Below are positions 7,831 to 20,340 of a stretch of DNA of 64,000 nt, piece after piece. A program made the position numbers and the translations under genes. Where the stretch lies: positions 124,001-188,000 of IMG/VR virus record IMGVR_UViG_3300027770_001980; one strand, given 5' to 3'. The notes under the pieces are model-generated. The model had not been told where the DNA came from. It made no database searches and worked only from the letters and a program-made list of their open reading frames with translations. Position 1 is the stretch's first letter; each line of letters begins with the position of its first letter.

Positions 7831-8742
7831 ATGACTACCCACATATCCCCTACTGGGAAAAAAGTAAAATACCTAAACAATCGCGATTTATTGACAGAGA
7901 TACACAGAAGTAAATGCTCATTTGGTAGTTTTACAGATCCAAAATATCAACAACACGACATCATATTAACAAATTTGGATAAAGTTAATATTAGAACCGT
8001 AGCCGAAGCCAAACGTAATAGAGCGAAACGAGAAGGTATATTGGCGTTTGGTGCAGCCAGAATAGCAGGCGATAAAAAAATCAAACTTGCAGAATGCACA
8101 GCAGACTATAAAACCATAGCTAAAACCGATATTGTGATACGTATTATGACTTTTGATCACATACCCATGGCACCGGGACGTAAAAAAACACTAAAGAATA
8201 CAGCCGATAGTCATGAGAAAGTTAACTTTCCTCCTTATCAACATTGGAAGTTTAACGACGAAGATGAATTGATCTGCGTAGGTAAGAGCCACTGGAAAGG
8301 CCCAATCGAAACTGGCAAATTTAGCAAAGATCATGGACGCATTACTGAGAACTTGGGCAGGATGTTTATTAAATTAAGTGAACGATATGCACAAAGAAGC
8401 AACTGGCGGGGGTATACTTACAATGAAGAAATGCGGGGACAGGCGATCCTACAATTAAGTCAAATTGGACTACAGTTTGACGAGAGCAAATCAGAGAACC
8501 CATTTGCATACTACACCGCAGCAGTCACTAACTCATTTACTCGTGTTCTAAATATTGAAAAGAAAAATCAAAACATTCGAGATGACATGTTGGAAGAAGC
8601 CGGATTGACTCCAAGTATGACTCGACAGTATAAACAAGAGTATGCTGAAGAAACTGCTCGTCAAGCAGAACTATACAAACACTTTAGGCAACCTAAATCA
8701 GAAGAAACAAGCATTGAGGAAGATGAGCAAACTGATGTTTGA
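7831..8742 (+). CDS. gp55: Late-transcription sigma factor, T4 gp55-like, with a long internal insertion
   Basis: YLNNRDLL at the N-terminus; NWRGYTYNEEM and SENPFAYYT...SFTRVLNIEKK match gp55-family motifs; adjacent to gp47/gp46 as in T4. Confidence 0.85.
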   Translation: MTTHISPTGKKVKYLNNRDLLTEIHRSKCSFGSFTDPKYQQHDIILTNLDKVNIRTVAEAKRNRAKREGILAFGAARIAGDKKIKLAECTADYKTIAKTDIVIRIMTFDHIPMAPGRKKTLKNTADSHEKVNFPPYQHWKFNDEDELICVGKSHWKGPIETGKFSKDHGRITENLGRMFIKLSERYAQRSNWRGYTYNEEMRGQAILQLSQIGLQFDESKSENPFAYYTAAVTNSFTRVLNIEKKNQNIRDDMLEEAGLTPSMTRQYKQEYAEETARQAELYKHFRQPKSEETSIEEDEQTDV

Positions 8743-15193: not shown

Positions 15194-16429
15194 ATGAAAA
15201 TTTCTCAACTCGTTACGACTAAAACAAAAACTCCATATCATGAAAGTGTAGCCGGAAGATTACCAAGGGGTATTAAATCTCAGCAACAACTGTTAAATCT
15301 TGGATACAGGATTGCGGTTGAAGATCTTGGATTAACAAAAGCAAAAACATTAAATGAAAACTTTGCCATCAAATTAATTAATTCATATCATACTCAATGT
15401 TTAAATGAAGGTATTGGGTCATTCTTAGGTAAAGCAGCAGGGCATGTTGTAGGAGCAGTAGGTGCTGCCGGTCGTGGAATTAAAGGAGCATGGGACGATG
15501 CTAAACAAGGGTATCAACAAGGTAAAGCATGGTGGGGAAGCGGAGAAGGTCCAACAGCAAGTGGAGCAGCACCAGCCGCAGGTGGAGCAGCACCGGCAGC
15601 AGGTGGAGCAGCACCGGCAGCAGGTAGTCCTACTACAACTACATTAACCAATCCAGGTAATAATAACGCACCGGGTGGATCGGCGGAACCGGAAGCCGCA
15701 CCTTCACCGGGCGGCGCAACACCAACACCACCGGCAGCAGGAACACCTCCAACTACAGGTGGTAAAGGTGTAGGTGACATCATGAAAGCTATTGATGGAT
15801 TAGATCCTGCAAGTAAAAAACAATTAGCAGGTGAATTAGATAAAAGTATCAAAGCAGCACCACCAGCAGGTGCTGCACCAGCAGGAGCAGAAGATCCTAA
15901 TAGTGGTACCAAGACTGGCACAACAAATCCAGGTGACTGGGCAGCAGATGGAAGAGATGCCTCGGCAGCAGATCATGCAACACCGGCAAATGTAAAACCA
16001 GCAGCAGGTGGAACAACACCTCAGCCAGACGAATTAGATGCTGTTAAAAAGAATGCAGGACTTCCAACAGGCGCAACTACACCAGCAGCAGGCGCAACTA
16101 CACCAGCAGCACCCGGAGCAACTCCACCAGCAGCACCCGGAGCAACTCCACCAGCAGCAAAAGCACCTGTAACAGGAACATCAGGTGGAGCAGGTAAAAG
16201 TATGATGGACTTAAAAGGTGCCGGCGTTAGCAATGCTTCACAATTAGCTAATCTACAAAAAACTGGAGCAGCAAATTTAGCAGCGGAAAAAGGAGCGGCA
16301 AATATGAACATACAGAAACCAACTTTTGCTGCTGATAAAAGAACTCCTGCCCAAATAGCTAAAATGAAACAAGCCGGATTTAGAGAAGAAGTTGAATTCC
16401 ACAGCAACTTCCTCGGTCGGAAGATTTAA
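15194..16429 (+). CDS. Putative internal head/ejection protein, Pro/Ala/Gly/Thr-rich
   Basis: LNEN, LNEG and FREE sites; shares QPDELDAVKKNAGLP with the upstream gene; short tandem repeats GAAPAAG and GATTPAA/PGATPPAA. Confidence 0.5.
   Translation: MKISQLVTTKTKTPYHESVAGRLPRGIKSQQQLLNLGYRIAVEDLGLTKAKTLNENFAIKLINSYHTQCLNEGIGSFLGKAAGHVVGAVGAAGRGIKGAWDDAKQGYQQGKAWWGSGEGPTASGAAPAAGGAAPAAGGAAPAAGSPTTTTLTNPGNNNAPGGSAEPEAAPSPGGATPTPPAAGTPPTTGGKGVGDIMKAIDGLDPASKKQLAGELDKSIKAAPPAGAAPAGAEDPNSGTKTGTTNPGDWAADGRDASAADHATPANVKPAAGGTTPQPDELDAVKKNAGLPTGATTPAAGATTPAAPGATPPAAPGATPPAAKAPVTGTSGGAGKSMMDLKGAGVSNASQLANLQKTGAANLAAEKGAANMNIQKPTFAADKRTPAQIAKMKQAGFREEVEFHSNFLGRKI
15560..16160 (+). repeat. Short in-frame tandem repeats: ~3x21 bp (GAAPAAG, ~15560-15625); 2x21 bp plus 2x24 bp (~16068-16160)
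   Basis: Directly visible repeated GGAGCAGCACCGGCAGCAGGT, GGCGCAACTACACCAGCAGCA and CCCGGAGCAACTCCACCAGCAGCA. Confidence 0.85.
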
Positions 16430-16644
16430 AAGAACGGCATCTGGGAAGTCTTTGTAATTTCCAGATTTTCTTCAATTATTTTTGCGATAATTTCTCTGTC
16501 TTCTGGGCACAGGAGATAGGCTTCACTTATTGAGATACTTCCTCTCATGTACCAACAGATTCTAAATAAAAGATCTTTTAAGGCTTTTGAATCTCGTTCG
16601 TATTCTTGACTTAGAGCATCAATGCCCGCTATATCAAGATTCAA
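16426..16644 (-). CDS. gp51-like baseplate/tail assembly protein; probably expressed as a -1 frameshift extension of the gp26-like gene
   Basis: ICWYMRGSISISEAYLL.PEDREII motif; only a TTG start with a poorly spaced SD; reading frame open from the slippery site at 16662-16656. Confidence 0.6.
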   Translation of the reverse strand: MNLDIAGIDALSQEYERDSKALKDLLFRICWYMRGSISISEAYLLCPEDREIIAKIIEENLEITKTSQMPFF

Positions 16645-16649
16645 AAGCC

Positions 16650-17537
16650 TTATACGAAAAAAGTTGTAGGATCAAATACTAAAGGAACTTCAAGGGTTTC
16701 ACCTTTAAATCCTTTTTCTCTCATTTCCTCAGTAACTTGAATTGTTAACGGTTTAAGTGTATTAATTTCTTTTAATGCTTCGAGATGTTTTTGTACAACT
16801 GTGAATATTTCTTTATCTACATTATCCACAAACTCTTGTATGAAAAAAGGATCATCGGTACTACCCTCACTACTATCAACTTTAAAAATAGACGATCTAA
16901 CTATTCCGATAGTTACTTCGGTAAGTTTATTAAAACTTTTATTAAAGGCTTCTAATTTGTTTTCATCTGTGGCATTTTCATCATTGACTATCTGCATGAT
17001 TTTTTGAGTTTCAAATGCTTTTAATGCATTTTCACTTACTACCTTATAGTTTAAAGGACGAACAAATACTGTTAGATCTTCGGTAATTGGTACAACTGGA
17101 TCCCATGTGACCTGTTGTTGATATGCATCCATTACTAATCTCAAGTCAACATCATAGTTCAATGTTAACTCATCATCGCCTTCGCCAAAATTAACTGGAG
17201 TATCCATCTTTTCACCATATGTAGCCATGCGTACAGCTATTAACAGATAGTCAAGATCGATGCTGGGTGTCATCCAAGCATTTTTTATATTAGGAATACA
17301 ATGCTGTAATACATCGACAACTGCTTGCCCTGTCATTACCGCATCGGGAATTTTTAGCATAAGTTCATCTTTGGCAGTCATTGAGTATACAGGATATTCA
17401 CCTGTTTCGGATATTTCTAAACTACCCTCTGGCCAATATTGTCCTTCACTGGGAAACCTGATGTAGATTTTAGGCTGTCTCATAAATGACGCTAAAGGAT
17501 TTTGCTTCTTAGGAATAGTTGGTGATGATGTTTTCAT
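16650..17537 (-). CDS. gp26: Baseplate hub assembly protein, gp26-like
   Basis: NPLASFMRQPKIYIRFPSEG, YSMTAKDEL, IDLDYLLIAVRMATYGE, VRPLNY motifs; late promoter TATAAATA at 17586-17579. Confidence 0.7.
   Translation of the reverse strand: MKTSSPTIPKKQNPLASFMRQPKIYIRFPSEGQYWPEGSLEISETGEYPVYSMTAKDELMLKIPDAVMTGQAVVDVLQHCIPNIKNAWMTPSIDLDYLLIAVRMATYGEKMDTPVNFGEGDDELTLNYDVDLRLVMDAYQQQVTWDPVVPITEDLTVFVRPLNYKVVSENALKAFETQKIMQIVNDENATDENKLEAFNKSFNKLTEVTIGIVRSSIFKVDSSEGSTDDPFFIQEFVDNVDKEIFTVVQKHLEALKEINTLKPLTIQVTEEMREKGFKGETLEVPLVFDPTTFFV
16656..16662 (-). promoter_or_regulatory. Candidate -1 programmed ribosomal frameshift heptamer T TTT TTC
   Basis: X XXY YYZ pattern in the correct phase, two codons before the gp26 stop; the -1 frame continues into the gp51-like ORF. 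Confidence 0.65.
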
Positions 17538-17551
17538 GCTTTTGTCTCCGA

Positions 17552-17586
17552 TAAATAAAAGATACGATCTATAACTCTTATTTATA
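17552..17586. promoter_or_regulatory. Face-to-face late promoters: TAAATA plus (17552-17557) for tape measure; TATAAATA minus (17586-17579) for gp26
   Basis: Motif matches; the predicted 5' UTRs overlap. Confidence 0.6.
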
Positions 17587-17610: not shown

Positions 17611-20340
17611 ATGTCTGATGTAACCGGTTCGATTGGAAATCAAGCAGTAGAGCTAAAAAATGCCGCCACGGAGGCCACGCTCAAGTTATTACTGCAAAAT
17701 ATGTCCACCAGTAATAGGCAAATAGCTGATGCTATTTCCAACATGGCAACTAAGGCAGGGTTAGATCCAACTAAAGTAGCAGGTGTTAATAAAGGACTTA
17801 CATCACTTACACAAGCCGGACAAGAAAGTGGCGGGGTATTAGGTGGATTGGGAACTTCTGCACAAGGTGGAGCAAGCTGGCTGAAAAAGATGAGCTTTTC
17901 AGTTGGAGTTGTTGATGGTGGACTTCAAAGGTTAGGTGGCGTTCTTGGCAACCTTGCACAGATAGCCGGTAGCGGCTCAATGAACATAAGTGAGTTTGGG
18001 GCCGCACTTAAAGGACTACCGCTGGTTGGTTGGTTCCTTGGGTTAGCTGGAGAATTATCAAAATTAAAAGAAGCCGAATTTAAAACATATCAAAATATCT
18101 CTCAAAGTGGTATTCAAATGGGTGGGTCATTAACTGGTCTGCGTCATGCTGCTATGGGCAGCATGATGACCTTGGATCAGCTTGGTGGTGTACTGAGAAA
18201 AAATTCTGAAACATTTACCAGAATGGGCGCAAACGCCGACGAAGGTGCTAAAAGATTTACACAAATGTCTGCACGGTTGGTAAGTTTAAACGACGGTGCT
18301 CTCATGAAGTTAGGACTCACAGGAGAGCAAGCTGCTAATGGGTTGGCGTCTTATATAGAAATGACCGGTGGTCTATCAAAAAGTGAACAACAAGATTCAA
18401 CTAAAACTGTTGCAAATACTGCAAAATATTTAGAACAACTTGATGCTTTAGCCGATATAACAGGTAAAAGCAAAGAGGAGATGGAAAAACAATTAAAAGA
18501 ACAAAGTAAAAATGCCGCATGGCAGGCTAAGTTAGCTACCATGACTCCTGAACAGAAAGAAAAAGCAATAGCAGGTATGGCTAAAGCATTGGCGCTTGGC
18601 GGTAAAGGAGCAGCAGATGCATTCCAATCTAAAGTCATGGGTGTTCCTCCTATTACTAAAGAAGCTAAAGCATTTACTGCTGTTATGGGAGAAACAAACA
18701 AATCTGTAATAGGCATGGCCAATGGAGTTAACGATTCATCACAAACTTTAGCAGATCAAAATAAACAGTATGCACAAGGACAGCAGGCTACTATTAAAGA
18801 TATGGGTAAAATGGGCGAACAACAAAGATTTTACATGATACAGCAAGGTGGTGCCGTTGGTGGTGTGATGCAAACAGTCGGGGAGGTTGCTCTTAAATCA
18901 AAAGACAAAACACTTGAAGAACTTAACCTTGATAGTGTTGCTGCTGAGAAAAAAAGACAATTAGAAGGAAGTGAAGCCGCCAGAGCAGCAGAAGCACAGA
19001 AAGCGTGGGTCGCGGTACAACAAGCATTATACGATGCATTAACTGGTTTAATGGGCGATCCCCAGGGCATATTAATGGAAGCTGCTCAAATTGCCCTTGG
19101 CATGATACAGTGGCTAACCAAATGGAAAAGCGAAATTATAACTCTTGTTAAAGTTATAGCCGGCGGCGCCGCAGTGATGACAGTGTTTTGGGCATTTATG
19201 AAAGCTAAAACCGCTATAGAAGCTGCACAGTCTTCAAAAGCAAGTGGAGGCGGATTATTAAAACAATTTAGTGCTGCTACTGGAGTAGGAGCAGGTGCAT
19301 TAGGATCAAACCCAAATAATCCAATGTGGGTTAAAGTTGTTGGTGGTGGCGCTTTAGGTGGGGGCGGTGCCGGTGGTAGAGGAGGTGCAGGGGGCGGCGG
19401 AGCCGGTGGTGGAGGAGGTCCGGGCATTGGTTCTAAGTTAGCCGAAGGATTGGGCGGCTTAGGAAAAGGTCTTCAAGGATTGCTTTCAGGTCTTGGAAAA
19501 GGTGCCGGGGAATTAATTAGAAGTATATTAACCGGATTAGGTAATGGGTTAGGTGCATTAGGAAAACCACAGGTGATGTTAGGTGCTGTTACATTAGGAT
19601 TGTTAGCGGCTGTATTGTGGGGAGCATCTAAAGCACTACAAAATTTTGCCACAATATCCTGGGAAGATATGGGAAAAGGATTTACCACGTTGCTGGGATT
19701 AGGAGCGTTGGCAGCAGTCTTAAGTTTTGCATCTCCTCTTATTATTGCTGGCTCGGTTGCTATTGGTGCAATGGGATTAGCACTAATCCCATTTGCTGTA
19801 GCGATGGCATTGGTTAGTGTATCGATGCCTACATTTACTGCCGGACTTACTGCAATGTCAACTATCAACGGTGTCGGCTTAGGTAAAGTTGCACTCGGAG
19901 CAGGTGCATTAGGTGGAGCACTTATTGCATGGGCACCGTTTGCTGTATTTGGTAGTGTTGCTGCAAGTGCGTTAACTCAGATGGCTGATAGTTTTGCAAA
20001 ACTTAGTACTGTAGATCCTGTTAAATTAGAAAAAGTAGCAGCAGCAATGCAAAAAGTTAAAGATGCAACACCTGGTATTGGCCAAGCAGTTGGTGGCGCT
20101 ATATCTGGATTTGCCAATAAATTAATTGGTACAAGTGAACCAGCACCGGCTGCCGCCGCAGCAAAATCGACACCCGCAGCAACTGATACAAGCAATCCAG
20201 CAAATGTTACAGTAACTGAACTAAGATCGTTAAATAAACAAATAACAGAAGTTTTGAAATTTATTAAAGAAACAGCTGATAATACTAAACAAACCGTGTC
20301 TGCTACTAAAGCACTCGACGGTAATAGATTTAAAAGGTAA
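17611..20340 (+). CDS. Tail tape measure protein
   Basis: 909 aa, helical A/G/K/Q-rich, poly-Gly stretch and several hydrophobic helices in the C-terminal third; divergent from gp26/gp51-like chaperones. Confidence 0.7.
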   Translation: MSDVTGSIGNQAVELKNAATEATLKLLLQNMSTSNRQIADAISNMATKAGLDPTKVAGVNKGLTSLTQAGQESGGVLGGLGTSAQGGASWLKKMSFSVGVVDGGLQRLGGVLGNLAQIAGSGSMNISEFGAALKGLPLVGWFLGLAGELSKLKEAEFKTYQNISQSGIQMGGSLTGLRHAAMGSMMTLDQLGGVLRKNSETFTRMGANADEGAKRFTQMSARLVSLNDGALMKLGLTGEQAANGLASYIEMTGGLSKSEQQDSTKTVANTAKYLEQLDALADITGKSKEEMEKQLKEQSKNAAWQAKLATMTPEQKEKAIAGMAKALALGGKGAADAFQSKVMGVPPITKEAKAFTAVMGETNKSVIGMANGVNDSSQTLADQNKQYAQGQQATIKDMGKMGEQQRFYMIQQGGAVGGVMQTVGEVALKSKDKTLEELNLDSVAAEKKRQLEGSEAARAAEAQKAWVAVQQALYDALTGLMGDPQGILMEAAQIALGMIQWLTKWKSEIITLVKVIAGGAAVMTVFWAFMKAKTAIEAAQSSKASGGGLLKQFSAATGVGAGALGSNPNNPMWVKVVGGGALGGGGAGGRGGAGGGGAGGGGGPGIGSKLAEGLGGLGKGLQGLLSGLGKGAGELIRSILTGLGNGLGALGKPQVMLGAVTLGLLAAVLWGASKALQNFATISWEDMGKGFTTLLGLGALAAVLSFASPLIIAGSVAIGAMGLALIPFAVAMALVSVSMPTFTAGLTAMSTINGVGLGKVALGAGALGGALIAWAPFAVFGSVAASALTQMADSFAKLSTVDPVKLEKVAAAMQKVKDATPGIGQAVGGAISGFANKLIGTSEPAPAAAAAKSTPAATDTSNPANVTVTELRSLNKQITEVLKFIKETADNTKQTVSATKALDGNRFKR

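Follow-up and report, generated by a model that had tools for sequence, protein, structure and literature searches.

A predicted −1 ribosomal frameshift links a gp26-like gene to a 'gp51'-type tail in a giant T4-related freshwater phage

A tail-assembly gene of phage lambda carries an X XXY YYZ heptamer a few codons ahead of its stop, and a −1 frameshift there gives rise to a short protein, gpG, and a C-terminally extended one, gpGT, which have their N-terminal part in common (Levin, Hendrix and Casjens, 1993; Xu, Hendrix and Duda, 2004; reviewed in PMC5009743). The second ORF lacks a start of its own, the gene adjoins the tape-measure gene, and the signal is conserved while the proteins diverge beyond recognition. 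Each of these features has a counterpart at the locus described here, where the frameshift and its two products are predicted and the tape-measure gene is a putative one. Tail-chaperone frameshifting is among the most conserved phage recoding events, and T4 is its cited exception, G-T frameshifting being described as conserved in long-tailed phages 'except T4' (PMC5009743). The T4 proteins gp26 and gp51 are classed as hub assembly chaperones, gp51 is missing from particles, and the roles of both in hub assembly have been unclear for decades (PMC3004832). The motif U_UU.U_UU.C is one of the efficient −1 motifs in Escherichia coli and is used by some IS elements (PMC4066793).

The window analyzed here is a stretch of 64,000 nucleotides (positions 124,001 to 188,000 of IMG/VR record IMGVR_UViG_3300027770_001980), and its source is a giant T4-related freshwater phage. 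On the minus strand, a gp26-like gene is followed by a 72-codon ORF in the −1 frame (Table 1). The junction reads GAT CCT ACA ACT TTT TTC GTA TAA GGC TTT TGA, with the heptamer T TTT TTC in X XXY YYZ phase relative to the 295-aa ORF and one codon ahead of its stop. The −1 frame reads TTT TTT CGT ATA AGG CTT TTG AAT and stays open until the stop at 16428-16426, and a TGA at 16674-16672 closes it upstream. Close to its 5' end the −1 ORF offers a single canonical start, a TTG at 16644, 3 nt past AAGG. A shift at the heptamer would produce a long form of 370 aa (294 + 76) with the predicted junction peptide GETLEVPLVFDPTTFFR, the zero-frame C-terminus being GETLEVPLVFDPTTFFV. A first-pass annotation, made from the sequence alone, had already described the junction sequence, the position and phase of the heptamer, the −1 frame, its closure by TGA and the TTG, and all of this held when compared with the window sequence and its ORF list. 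A gp55-like late sigma factor is encoded elsewhere in the window (7831-8742).

Table 1. Features of the gp26-like locus and its divergent neighbor, in window coordinates.
Feature	Position	Strand	Remarks
T4-type late-promoter-like motif TATAAATA	17579-17586	−	upstream of gp26-like gene, by sequence reading; promoter function only putative
GGAG, ribosome binding site of gp26-like gene	17549-17546	−	sequence reading
gp26-like gene, zero-frame short form, 295 aa	17537-16650	−	ATG 17537, TAA 16652-16650; ORF list
Slippery heptamer T TTT TTC	16662-16656	−	last two Phe codons of gp26-like gene
Spacer GTA TAA, 6 nt	16650-16655	−	last zero-frame codon and zero-frame stop
Stem 5' arm GGCUUUUGAAUCUUG	16635-16649	−	includes putative TTG start 16644-16642
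Stem 3' arm CGAGAUUCAAAAGCC	16582-16596	−	within −1 ORF
−1 extension, 'T-like' part	16426-16656	−	76 codons, CGT 16656 to stop 16428-16426
Putative tape measure protein / tail length determinator, 909 aa	17611-20340	+	divergent neighbor

The bare string TTTTTTC occurs at chance level, with 22 copies on both strands of the window against 20.7 ± 4.6 expected, and what exceeds chance is the conservation of the heptamer rather than its occurrence. It is kept in phase in 160 of 160 related IMG/VR loci, comprising 80 relatives of the window gene and 80 cyanophage-type loci, and in 14 isolated phages. All 80 relatives of the window gene, at 51-71% identity, carry T TTT TTC in phase, as do Phosso and Atu_ph07 at 26-29% identity and the phages PA5oct, RaK2, 121Q, Serratia BF, GAP32, CBB, Vibrio 2.275.O and SCTP-2. 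The in-phase heptamer of XacN1, Xoo-sp13 and RsoM2USA is the variant T TTT TTT, and cyanophage S-BM1 and the 80 cyanophage-type loci (80/80) likewise have it in phase. Its position is fixed, while the distance to the zero-frame stop that follows varies between lineages from 1 to 12 codons. In 76 of 76 distinct homologous ORFs the junction is encoded by NNT TTT TTC, compared with a background outside the junction of the same genes in which Phe is encoded by TTT in 82% and TTC in 18% of cases and 39% of codons end in T; the NNT ahead of TTT TTC represents seven different codons for seven amino acids. Part of this conservation is forced by overlapping constraints (the FF pair, the −1 Arg, the stop and a stem arm), and these elements are not fully independent of each other.

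Coding constraint is also visible in the −1 frame, where the peptide FFR[ILMV]RLL is conserved among the relatives starting at the slip site, ahead of any candidate start codon. Spacer changes are either silent or conservative when read in the −1 frame (CGN, then I/L/M/V) and non-conservative when read in the zero frame (V/A/G/E). No start codon is conserved, since the TTG, which sits at +18 in roughly 85% of the clade of the window, swaps with TTA across relatives. An ATG overlapping the gp26-like stop (ATGA) is present in Phosso, Atu_ph07 and about 12 IMG/VR loci; because it alternates with ATA, CTA, TTA and GTA, we take it for a codon that specifies a hydrophobic residue, not for an initiation site. 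In eight loci, which represent seven distinct sequences, ATG, GTG and TTG are all missing over 93-114 nt, and one further locus is without any of the three over 60 nt. Among the matches to a profile of the tail, the starts that gene callers chose for the small ORF are spread over more than 10 different positions, and in RaK2 and PA5oct no small ORF is annotated at all. The profile search recovered 417 relatives, including C-terminal in-frame fusions. The tail is modeled as helical (pLDDT 73), and the 72-codon ORF has no Pfam or PHROG match.

The frameshift reading of the first-pass annotation is thus supported, and the check it had proposed, conservation of the slippery site in relatives, was strongly positive. 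It had also stated that the reading would fall if relatives lacked the heptamer and had a proper ATG for the second ORF. This is half met, as an ATG does exist in some relatives, yet it alternates like a hydrophobic codon and the heptamer is kept. The first-pass annotation had not seen the covarying stem downstream.

This stem starts six bases past the heptamer and has 13-18 bp with compensatory changes. RNAalifold, run unguided, predicted 10 bp of the helix. The 15-bp stem is paired to 85%, compared with 33-53% in slid controls, and contains 59 double-change cells compared with 9-19. None of 500 shuffles matched its percentage of pairing, its two-sided changed pairs and cells or its covariation score, while the observed value for further pair types was reached by 16 of 500. 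Compensatory changes affect 10 of the 15 pairs, and the arms are compensated in both Phosso (GGCUCUUG/CAAGAGCC) and Atu_ph07 (GGCUCUUUG/CAAAGAGCC). In the window itself the stem has 18 bp, with −29 kcal/mol and a z of −4.3, and AAGG and TTG both lie inside it. For RaK2-type and other lineages the stems are single-sequence predictions only, without statistics, and no conserved downstream structure was found in an ungapped alignment of the cyanophage loci. A Shine-Dalgarno-like stimulator upstream of the heptamer was not seen by eye in the alignment of relatives.

The gp26-like protein belongs to PF12322 (T4_baseplate; E 1e-7, 32.4 bits against a cut-off of 24.5 bits, residues 66-265) and matches phrog_150, baseplate hub (E 2e-10), and its AF2 model is confident (pLDDT 90). 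No isolated phage matched the locus in a blastn search. We found no sequence or fold similarity between known tail assembly chaperones and either the gp26-like protein or the tail. The Pfam search returned no chaperone, the sole trace being phrog_1749 (E 0.005 over 37 residues), and profile searches of the PDB by sequence gave only noise. Foldseek with the confident gp26-like model returned nothing below E 0.1, and a wide VIA-align search only a generic helical hairpin (Z ≤ 8), so that these PDB, Foldseek and VIA-align searches neither make nor exclude a fold link to known chaperones. The mass-spectrometry table of CBB virions lists the tape-measure-like CBB_251, and the gp26-like CBB_250 is absent from it. 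One GenBank record labels a gp51 homologue 'tape measure protein assembly chaperone'.

The divergent neighbor of the gp26-like gene, a 909-aa ORF, has no Pfam or PHROG match, and neither have two low-complexity neighboring ORFs. Its Atlas feature neighbors carry the tape-measure domains PF10145 and PF20155 (scores 0.92-0.93), which we regard as a lead only. Its syntenic homologues belong to the virion in CBB, PA5oct and 121Q, and that of RaK2 is annotated as tape-measure-like. An identity as tape-measure protein is therefore possible, resting on leads and on the virion proteomics of the homologues. In the window and in RaK2-like phages the gp26-like gene is adjacent but divergent to this tape-measure-like gene, while in cyanophage S-BM1 the gene order is collinear (26-'51'-large gene). 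The comparison with lambda in the first-pass annotation needs a correction here, as the two genes adjoin but the gp26-like gene is divergent, and its neighbor is not downstream as in lambda. A search of the 221-kb record with PF06841 did not find the tail tube gene.

Long forms that are encoded without a shift occur elsewhere. About 17 of the best 150 tail-profile matches are in-frame fusions of 319-351 aa with the tail at the C-terminus, and at two of these loci (L096 and L099) a short and a long PF12322 gene stand in tandem. T4, whose gp26 and gp51 are of the same Pfam family as the window gene, also possesses both forms: gp26 consists of nothing but the PF12322 domain, and gp51 adds a 48-aa tail to a full PF12322 domain (residues 1-201). 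In gp51 the boundary between domain and tail is marked by ..DVF-KLLV.., and the corresponding C-terminal FF is the slip site of the window; the tail follows the domain at the FF junction in T4, the cyanophages and the window clade alike. T4 differs from the window in that its two forms come from separate, divergently transcribed paralogous genes, in that gene 26 has an internal start (26'), and in that there is no slippery site, gp26 ending in ..GAG TTC TTT GAG.. with gene 25 following. The same non-slippery codons, TTC TTT, encode the FF motif in the short gene of L096.

The cyanophages have the same arrangement as the window. Their gp26 genes end in NNT TTT TTC NNN stop, as in the window, and are followed in 80 of 80 loci by a −1 ORF of 60-68 codons that starts with FFRxxL, the small 'gp51' ORF of T4-GC_12 and phrog_634. 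The latter family is common to T4 gp51 (E 1e-23) and the cyanophage −1 peptide (E 4e-31), and hhalign aligns the cyanophage profile to residues 208-244 of T4 gp51. The cyanophages differ from the window in the collinear next gene, the absence of a conserved downstream structure in the alignment above, and a distinct sequence family of the tail. Between the window tail and the cyanophage/T4 gp51 tails there is no more than a weak link (hhalign E 8e-4, probability 25%); the window clade has in common with them the junction motif FFRxxLL and a P-x-[ED]-[RK] motif. Compared directly with T4 gp51, the 72-codon ORF showed no significant similarity (BLASTP E 0.08, hhalign probability 4%), and it has no phrog_634 match. 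The label 'gp51-like' given to this ORF in the first-pass annotation therefore failed on sequence similarity to T4 gp51 and rests on position and the cyanophage annotation T4-GC_12. Three results support its proposal that gp26 and gp51 correspond to a short and a long form: the in-frame fusions, the domain-plus-tail architecture of gp51, and the membership of the T4 and cyanophage tails in phrog_634.

Taken together, the gp26-like gene very likely ends in a −1 programmed ribosomal frameshift site, with products of 295 and 370 aa (probability about 0.85). This assessment is in silico, without data on products or on shifting. The heptamer with its phase and conservation, the −1 coding constraint, the lack of a conserved start, the covarying stem and the in-frame long forms elsewhere are shown at that level. 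According to the proposed mechanism, most ribosomes would read ...ACU UUU UUC GUA UAA and release the 295-aa protein. A fraction would be held up by the stem, which starts 6 nt past the heptamer; with tRNA-Phe occupying both the P and the A site on U UUU UUC, these ribosomes would slip back by one base and go on with CGU AUA AGG CUU UUG. The predicted 370-aa product would consist of gp26-like residues 1-294 and the 76-aa helical tail.

We further infer that the two forms may act like gpG and gpGT of lambda, as non-virion assembly chaperones in a fixed ratio, and that their clients may be the tape-measure protein and the central hub encoded next door, for which no binding data are available. 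T4 may reach the same end with two paralogous genes, 26 for the short and 51 for the long form, as hard-wired equivalents of the two products. Such a lambda-like role, which the first-pass annotation had also proposed, is inferred and not shown, given that neither the sequence nor the fold searches tied these proteins to known tail assembly chaperones. The gene order of S-BM1, 26-'51'-large gene, does parallel G-T-H. The window differs from lambda in that its short form is a 295-aa PF12322 protein unrelated to known such chaperones, in that the gene is divergent from the tape-measure-like gene and not upstream of it, and in its strong covarying stem. The frameshift site of lambda is not known to need such a downstream structure. 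The locus also resembles IS3-family elements and dnaX, where a heptamer is likewise followed, a few nucleotides downstream, by a stem or pseudoknot; it differs from them in having no visible upstream Shine-Dalgarno-like stimulator, and in that its products are assembly proteins and not a transposase or polymerase subunit.

The alternative that survives best is that two separate proteins are made, the small ORF being translated from TTG 16644 or from the stop-overlapping ATG by initiation or termination-reinitiation, without any fusion and with the heptamer as merely two Phe codons. In its favor are the TTG at +18 in most of the clade and the ATGA overlap in Phosso, Atu_ph07 and about 12 loci, the AAGG or GAGG ahead of TTG, and public annotations that call a distinct small ORF. 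Against it, the start is not conserved and nine loci are startless for 60-114 nt, the −1 peptide is conserved ahead of all candidate starts, and AAGG is merely 3 nt from TTG with both inside the stem. The wobble T is moreover kept over seven codons, which coupling does not require, and the in-frame fusions and T4 gp51 point to the joined protein as the functional unit. We therefore consider this alternative unlikely, but with TTG or ATG at most loci, reinitiation could still yield a certain amount of the small protein in free form.

Less probable still is transcriptional slippage, in which the polymerase would add one U in the T run and the edited mRNA would be translated normally. The site is a homopolymer, UUUUUUU has been discussed as slippage-prone (PMC4066793), and RsoM2USA with T9 and XacN1 and Xoo-sp13 with T7 have run lengths that are known to slip. 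However, the window and most lineages have only 6 T, and runs known to slip efficiently are longer than this. A strict X XXY YYZ phase that includes the wobble T, and a covarying stem 6 nt away, mark a ribosomal and not a polymerase shift, and we regard slippage as very unlikely. The sequencing runs holding the sequence are DNA metagenomes only, and no RNA runs were found.

Finally, an artefact or decay, that is, a homopolymer sequencing error or a recent mutation splitting one gene, could be suspected because homopolymers are error-prone and in-frame single-gene versions exist in other lineages, but it is all but excluded by the same T6 and frame relation in more than 170 independent assemblies and isolate genomes, by at least 120 exact copies of a 20-nt cassette in IMG/VR, by both ORFs remaining intact across divergence down to 22-29% identity, and by contigs from other studies' freshwater metagenomes, which span the T6 run without indels and thus show that it is not an assembly error.

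Returning to the frameshift as the preferred reading, we found no description of it for gp26/gp51 in the open-access literature searched; subscription journals were not covered, and a prior report is possible. A bolder reading, which as a joint claim we favor by a narrow margin only, is that the tail and hub chaperone ancestral to the whole T4 superfamily was encoded by a single gene 26 with a −1 shift into a '51' tail. Cyanophages (Kyanoviridae) and jumbo phages of the RaK2, PA5oct, Atu_ph07 and XacN1 types would have kept this arrangement. In T4 and other members of the Straboviridae, and independently in some uncultured lineages, a duplication would have replaced it by a short copy, 26, and a long copy with both parts in frame, 51. 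T4 would then be an exception only in how the two forms are made and not in its need for them, and gp26 and gp51 would be its tape-measure chaperones.

The finding also bears on annotation, since in hundreds of genomes the small ORF is now missing, cut at arbitrary starts or called 'hypothetical', and this can be corrected. The locus and its relatives provide a natural series for the replacement of a frameshift by duplication, from frameshift through tandem duplicates to divergent duplicates. The predicted frameshift occurs in cyanophages and in several jumbo phage families, and the hard-wired two-gene versions support the same model. A gp26-type domain that is joined to a gp51-type tail by a conserved shift thus offers a testable model for both proteins.

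At the junction the minus strand reads GAT CCT ACA ACT TTT TTC GTA TAA GGC TTT TGA ATC TTG. The first-pass annotation had proposed that a -1 frameshift of the lambda G/GT type joins a gp26-like and a gp51-like ORF here, and its description of the ORFs, the heptamer, its phase and the upstream closure of the -1 frame held in full when the sequence was re-read. The best-supported interpretation is programmed -1 ribosomal frameshifting, predicted to yield two forms, of 295 aa and 370 aa (the latter being residues 1-294 plus a 76-aa tail). We regard this as very likely (probability about 0.85), on comparative evidence only, no product having been observed. The 295-aa protein matches Pfam PF12322 (T4_baseplate, E 1e-7, over the curated cut-off) and is also assigned to phrog_150 (baseplate hub); the small ORF has no family match in Pfam or PHROG.

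Features of the gp26-like locus and T4-superfamily genes of the virus
Feature	Position	Strand	Remark
gp55-like late sigma factor	7831-8742	+	T4-superfamily gene
Ala/Gly/Pro-rich ORF, 723 aa	13011-15182	+	
Ala/Gly/Pro-rich ORF, 411 aa	15194-16429	+	stop (16429) overlaps the convergent -1 ORF stop (16426)
Small ORF, 72 codons	TTG 16644 to stop 16428-16426	-	-1 frame relative to gp26-like ORF
gp26-like ORF, 295 aa	ATG 17537 to TAA 16652-16650	-	from ORF list
Heptamer T TTT TTC	16662-16656	-	X XXY YYZ phase
TGA closing the -1 frame upstream	16674-16672	-	
Late-promoter-like motif TATAAATA	17579-17586	-	read from the sequence
909-aa gene, putative tape measure protein	17611-20340	+	
gp5-like hub/lysozyme protein			T4-superfamily gene
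gp46/47-like nucleases			T4-superfamily genes
Portal protein, prohead protease, major capsid protein			T4-superfamily genes
Tail fibre proteins			T4-superfamily genes

The window derives from a 221-kb IMG/VR virus record with an estimated completeness of 62%, its sequence is present in freshwater metagenomes, and the other genes of the virus place it in the T4 superfamily. The gp26-like gene has a GGAG 8 nt 5' of its ATG. The late-promoter-like motif lies about 45 nt 5' of this ATG, within the 73-nt divergent intergenic region common to the gp26-like and 909-aa genes, and the same window encodes a gp55-like late sigma factor. Both Ala/Gly/Pro-rich ORFs lack Pfam and PHROG matches, share the motif QPDELDAVKKNAGLP and carry internal tandem repeats (for example a unit of about 26 aa, DNPLGITARPSINNVDQPGSVD.., present three times, and repeated AAPAAGG).

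TTTTTTC occurs 22 times on both strands of the window versus 20.7 expected. The heptamer by itself is thus not above chance, and the signal comes from comparison with relatives. Homologues found by tblastn were restricted to jumbo myoviruses (22-29% identity). IMG/VR holds more than 548 relatives, and in all 80 loci retrieved for comparison (the best, 51-71% identity) the junction is NNT TTT TTC GNN TRA GGCTTTT. Among 76 distinct ORFs, the Phe pair is invariably TTT then TTC and the preceding codon always ends in T, although seven different codons are used; over the rest of these genes, TTT makes up 82% of Phe codons and T is the third base of just 39% of all codons. The Phe of the FDP motif, five codons upstream, serves as an internal control and is encoded by both TTT and TTC. 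The in-phase heptamer was also found in Phosso, Atu_ph07, PA5oct, RaK2, 121Q, Serratia BF, GAP32, CBB, Vibrio 2.275.O and SCTP-2, and as the variant T TTT TTT in XacN1, Xoo-sp13 and RsoM2USA. Its position is fixed, while the zero-frame stop follows 1, 3, 4, 6, 11 or 12 codons later depending on lineage. IMG/VR contains the 20-nt cassette in at least 120 exact copies. In three metagenome runs, co-occurring relatives yield short contigs whose match to the window is confined to 16634-16677, which is therefore the most conserved DNA of the gene. In E. coli, U_UU.U_UU.C ranks among the efficient -1 heptamers; it also serves in some IS elements (PMC4066793).

Two side observations concern these sequences. 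The short contigs, from other phages of the same lakes, match over about 40 nt (slip site and 5' stem arm) at 90-95% identity and produce a local depth peak. In one IMG/VR relative (L066, 2097-2198), TCA replaces the zero-frame stop and makes the short form four codons longer, with heptamer, stem and -1 ORF unaltered.

Comparative evidence shows that coding constraint in the -1 frame begins at the heptamer and not at any start codon. The translated frame opens FFR[ILMV]RLL throughout the window's clade, FFRMRL in Phosso and Atu_ph07, FFRSQLL, FFRVMLL, FFRSRLL or FFRTKLL in RaK2-type phages and FFRVALL in cyanophage S-BM1. Read in the -1 frame, base changes in the spacer are either synonymous or conservative (CGN, then I/L/M/V); read in the zero frame, they are non-conservative (V/A/G/E). 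The candidate TTG start interchanges with TTA in relatives, and the stop-overlapping ATG seen in Phosso, Atu_ph07 and roughly 12 loci interchanges with ATA, CTA, TTA and GTA. ATG, GTG and TTG are all missing over 93-114 nt in eight loci (seven distinct sequences) and over 60 nt in a ninth; no downstream gene is annotated in RaK2 or PA5oct. Gene-caller starts of 417 database relatives of the tail fall at more than 10 different profile positions. In the window, only 3 nt separate an AAGG from the TTG, and the stem described below contains both.

This stem begins 6 nt past the heptamer and is formed by GGCUUUUGNAUC and, about 45 nt 3' of it, GAUNCAAAAGCC. Unguided RNAalifold on 64 sequences recovered a 10-bp helix with compensatory changes at five pairs. 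A 15-bp version has 85% of its cells paired, versus 33-53% with the 3' partner slid; 59 cells versus 9-19 carry double changes, and two-sided changes occur at 10 of 15 pairs. None of 500 shuffles reached the observed percentage paired, pairs or cells changed on both sides, or covariation score; for a fifth measure, further pair types, 16 of 500 did. Compensated stems are found in Phosso (GGCUCUUG/CAAGAGCC), Atu_ph07 (GGCUCUUUG/CAAAGAGCC) and another relative, L068 (GAC/GUC), and the window's helix extends to 18 bp (-29 kcal/mol, z -4.3). The 3' arm falls on conserved Lys-Ala codons, and the Ala codon is GCC without exception, a synonymous site constrained by the structure. Other lineages have their own stems 6-14 nt downstream, predicted from individual sequences only, among them a perfect 11-bp hairpin 14 nt past the slip site of RsoM2USA. 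No consensus downstream structure was found in the cyanophage set, aligned without gaps.

In other lineages the long form exists as an in-frame protein. Among the top 150 matches of the tail profile in 1.84 billion representative proteins were, besides small ORFs, about 17 proteins of 319-351 aa whose gp26-like domain is continuous into ..F-R-x-x-L-I.. and a C-terminal tail. Two of the loci encoding these proteins, L096 and L099, carry tandem PF12322 genes, a short one (294-297 aa) followed by a long in-frame one; in L096 the short gene ends in the non-slippery GAC TTC TTT and the heptamer is gone. The short gene of L099 (411-1295) keeps an AAT TTT TTC ACT.. end although the long form is separately encoded, possibly an intermediate state.

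T4 follows the logic of the tandem loci: gp26 (208 aa) consists of an entire PF12322 domain, ending ..EFFELL (FF = TTC TTT) with gene 25 next, and gp51 (249 aa) adds 48 residues to a complete domain of its own (residues 1-201). Throughout Straboviridae, gp51 occurs full-length and in frame. Against phrog_634, gp51 aligns through residues 147-246 (positions 2-103 of the family) and the cyanophage -1 peptide at positions 56-119 (E 4e-31). By hhalign, a profile of the cyanophage tail falls on gp51 residues 208-244 (E 5e-4), and the gp51 junction ..DVF-KLLV.. aligns with FF-RxxLL. Homology of the window's own tail to these is no more than weakly supported, although position and junction motif are in agreement. 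In each of the 80 cyanophage-type loci retrieved, the heptamer is in phase, one codon separates it from the stop, and the -1 ORF spans 60-68 codons. In S-BM1, gp26 ends AGT TTT TTC GCG TAG, a large collinear gene with a weak tape-measure match comes next, and the small ORF carries the name 'T4-GC_12 gp51', which accounts for the gp51 label in the first-pass annotation. T4 gene 26 also has an annotated internal start (26', L083:3803-4090) giving a C-terminal fragment, so the family has more than two products in T4. Two Cys pairs (CxxC ... CxxC), likely a zinc ribbon, are present in T4 gp26 and gp51, Phosso, Atu_ph07, RaK2-type phages and the long in-frame forms, and are lost in the window's clade (compared with loci L001, L002, L083 and L085-L092).

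Separate translation of the small ORF, by its own initiation or by reinitiation, is very unlikely as the main account and leaves unexplained the wobble-T conservation, the coding constraint 5' of the starts, the stem spacing and the in-frame fusions; as a minor route it is not ruled out. Transcriptional slippage at the T run is likewise very improbable in the window, where the run is only T6. Longer runs, of T7-T9, may give it some part, and in RsoM2USA (T9), XacN1 and Xoo-sp13 (both T7) it could supplement or replace ribosomal shifting. Artefact or gene decay is all but excluded by the number of independent assemblies, and contigs from other studies have no indel across the T run, which rules out assembly error.

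Under ribosomal frameshifting, we posit that the two forms would be produced in a fixed ratio, like lambda gpG/gpGT, and act as assembly chaperones for the tape measure protein and hub. This role is inferred from four lines: the general rule of tail-chaperone frameshifting in long-tailed phages (PMC5009743); the classification of T4 gp26 and gp51 as hub assembly chaperones, with gp51 not in particles (PMC3004832); the adjoining 909-aa gene, whose homologues are virion proteins and have tape-measure-like annotations; and the CBB virion proteome, which lists the homologue of this neighbor and lacks the gp26-like protein. Searches of Pfam, PHROG, PDB sequences and folds found no similarity of the gp26-like protein or tail to known chaperone families, and in the window the gp26-like gene is divergent from the tape-measure-like gene. 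Together with the weak tail homology, this weighs against placing the locus in those families.

The chaperone idea is not new, since one GenBank record already names gp51 'tape measure protein assembly chaperone'. We found no description of a gp26/gp51 frameshift in the full-text literature searched (subscription journals were outside coverage), and none of 14 GenBank records inspected annotates one. The predicted frameshift would extend tail-assembly frameshifting to a protein family and a phage lineage in which it had been held to be absent.
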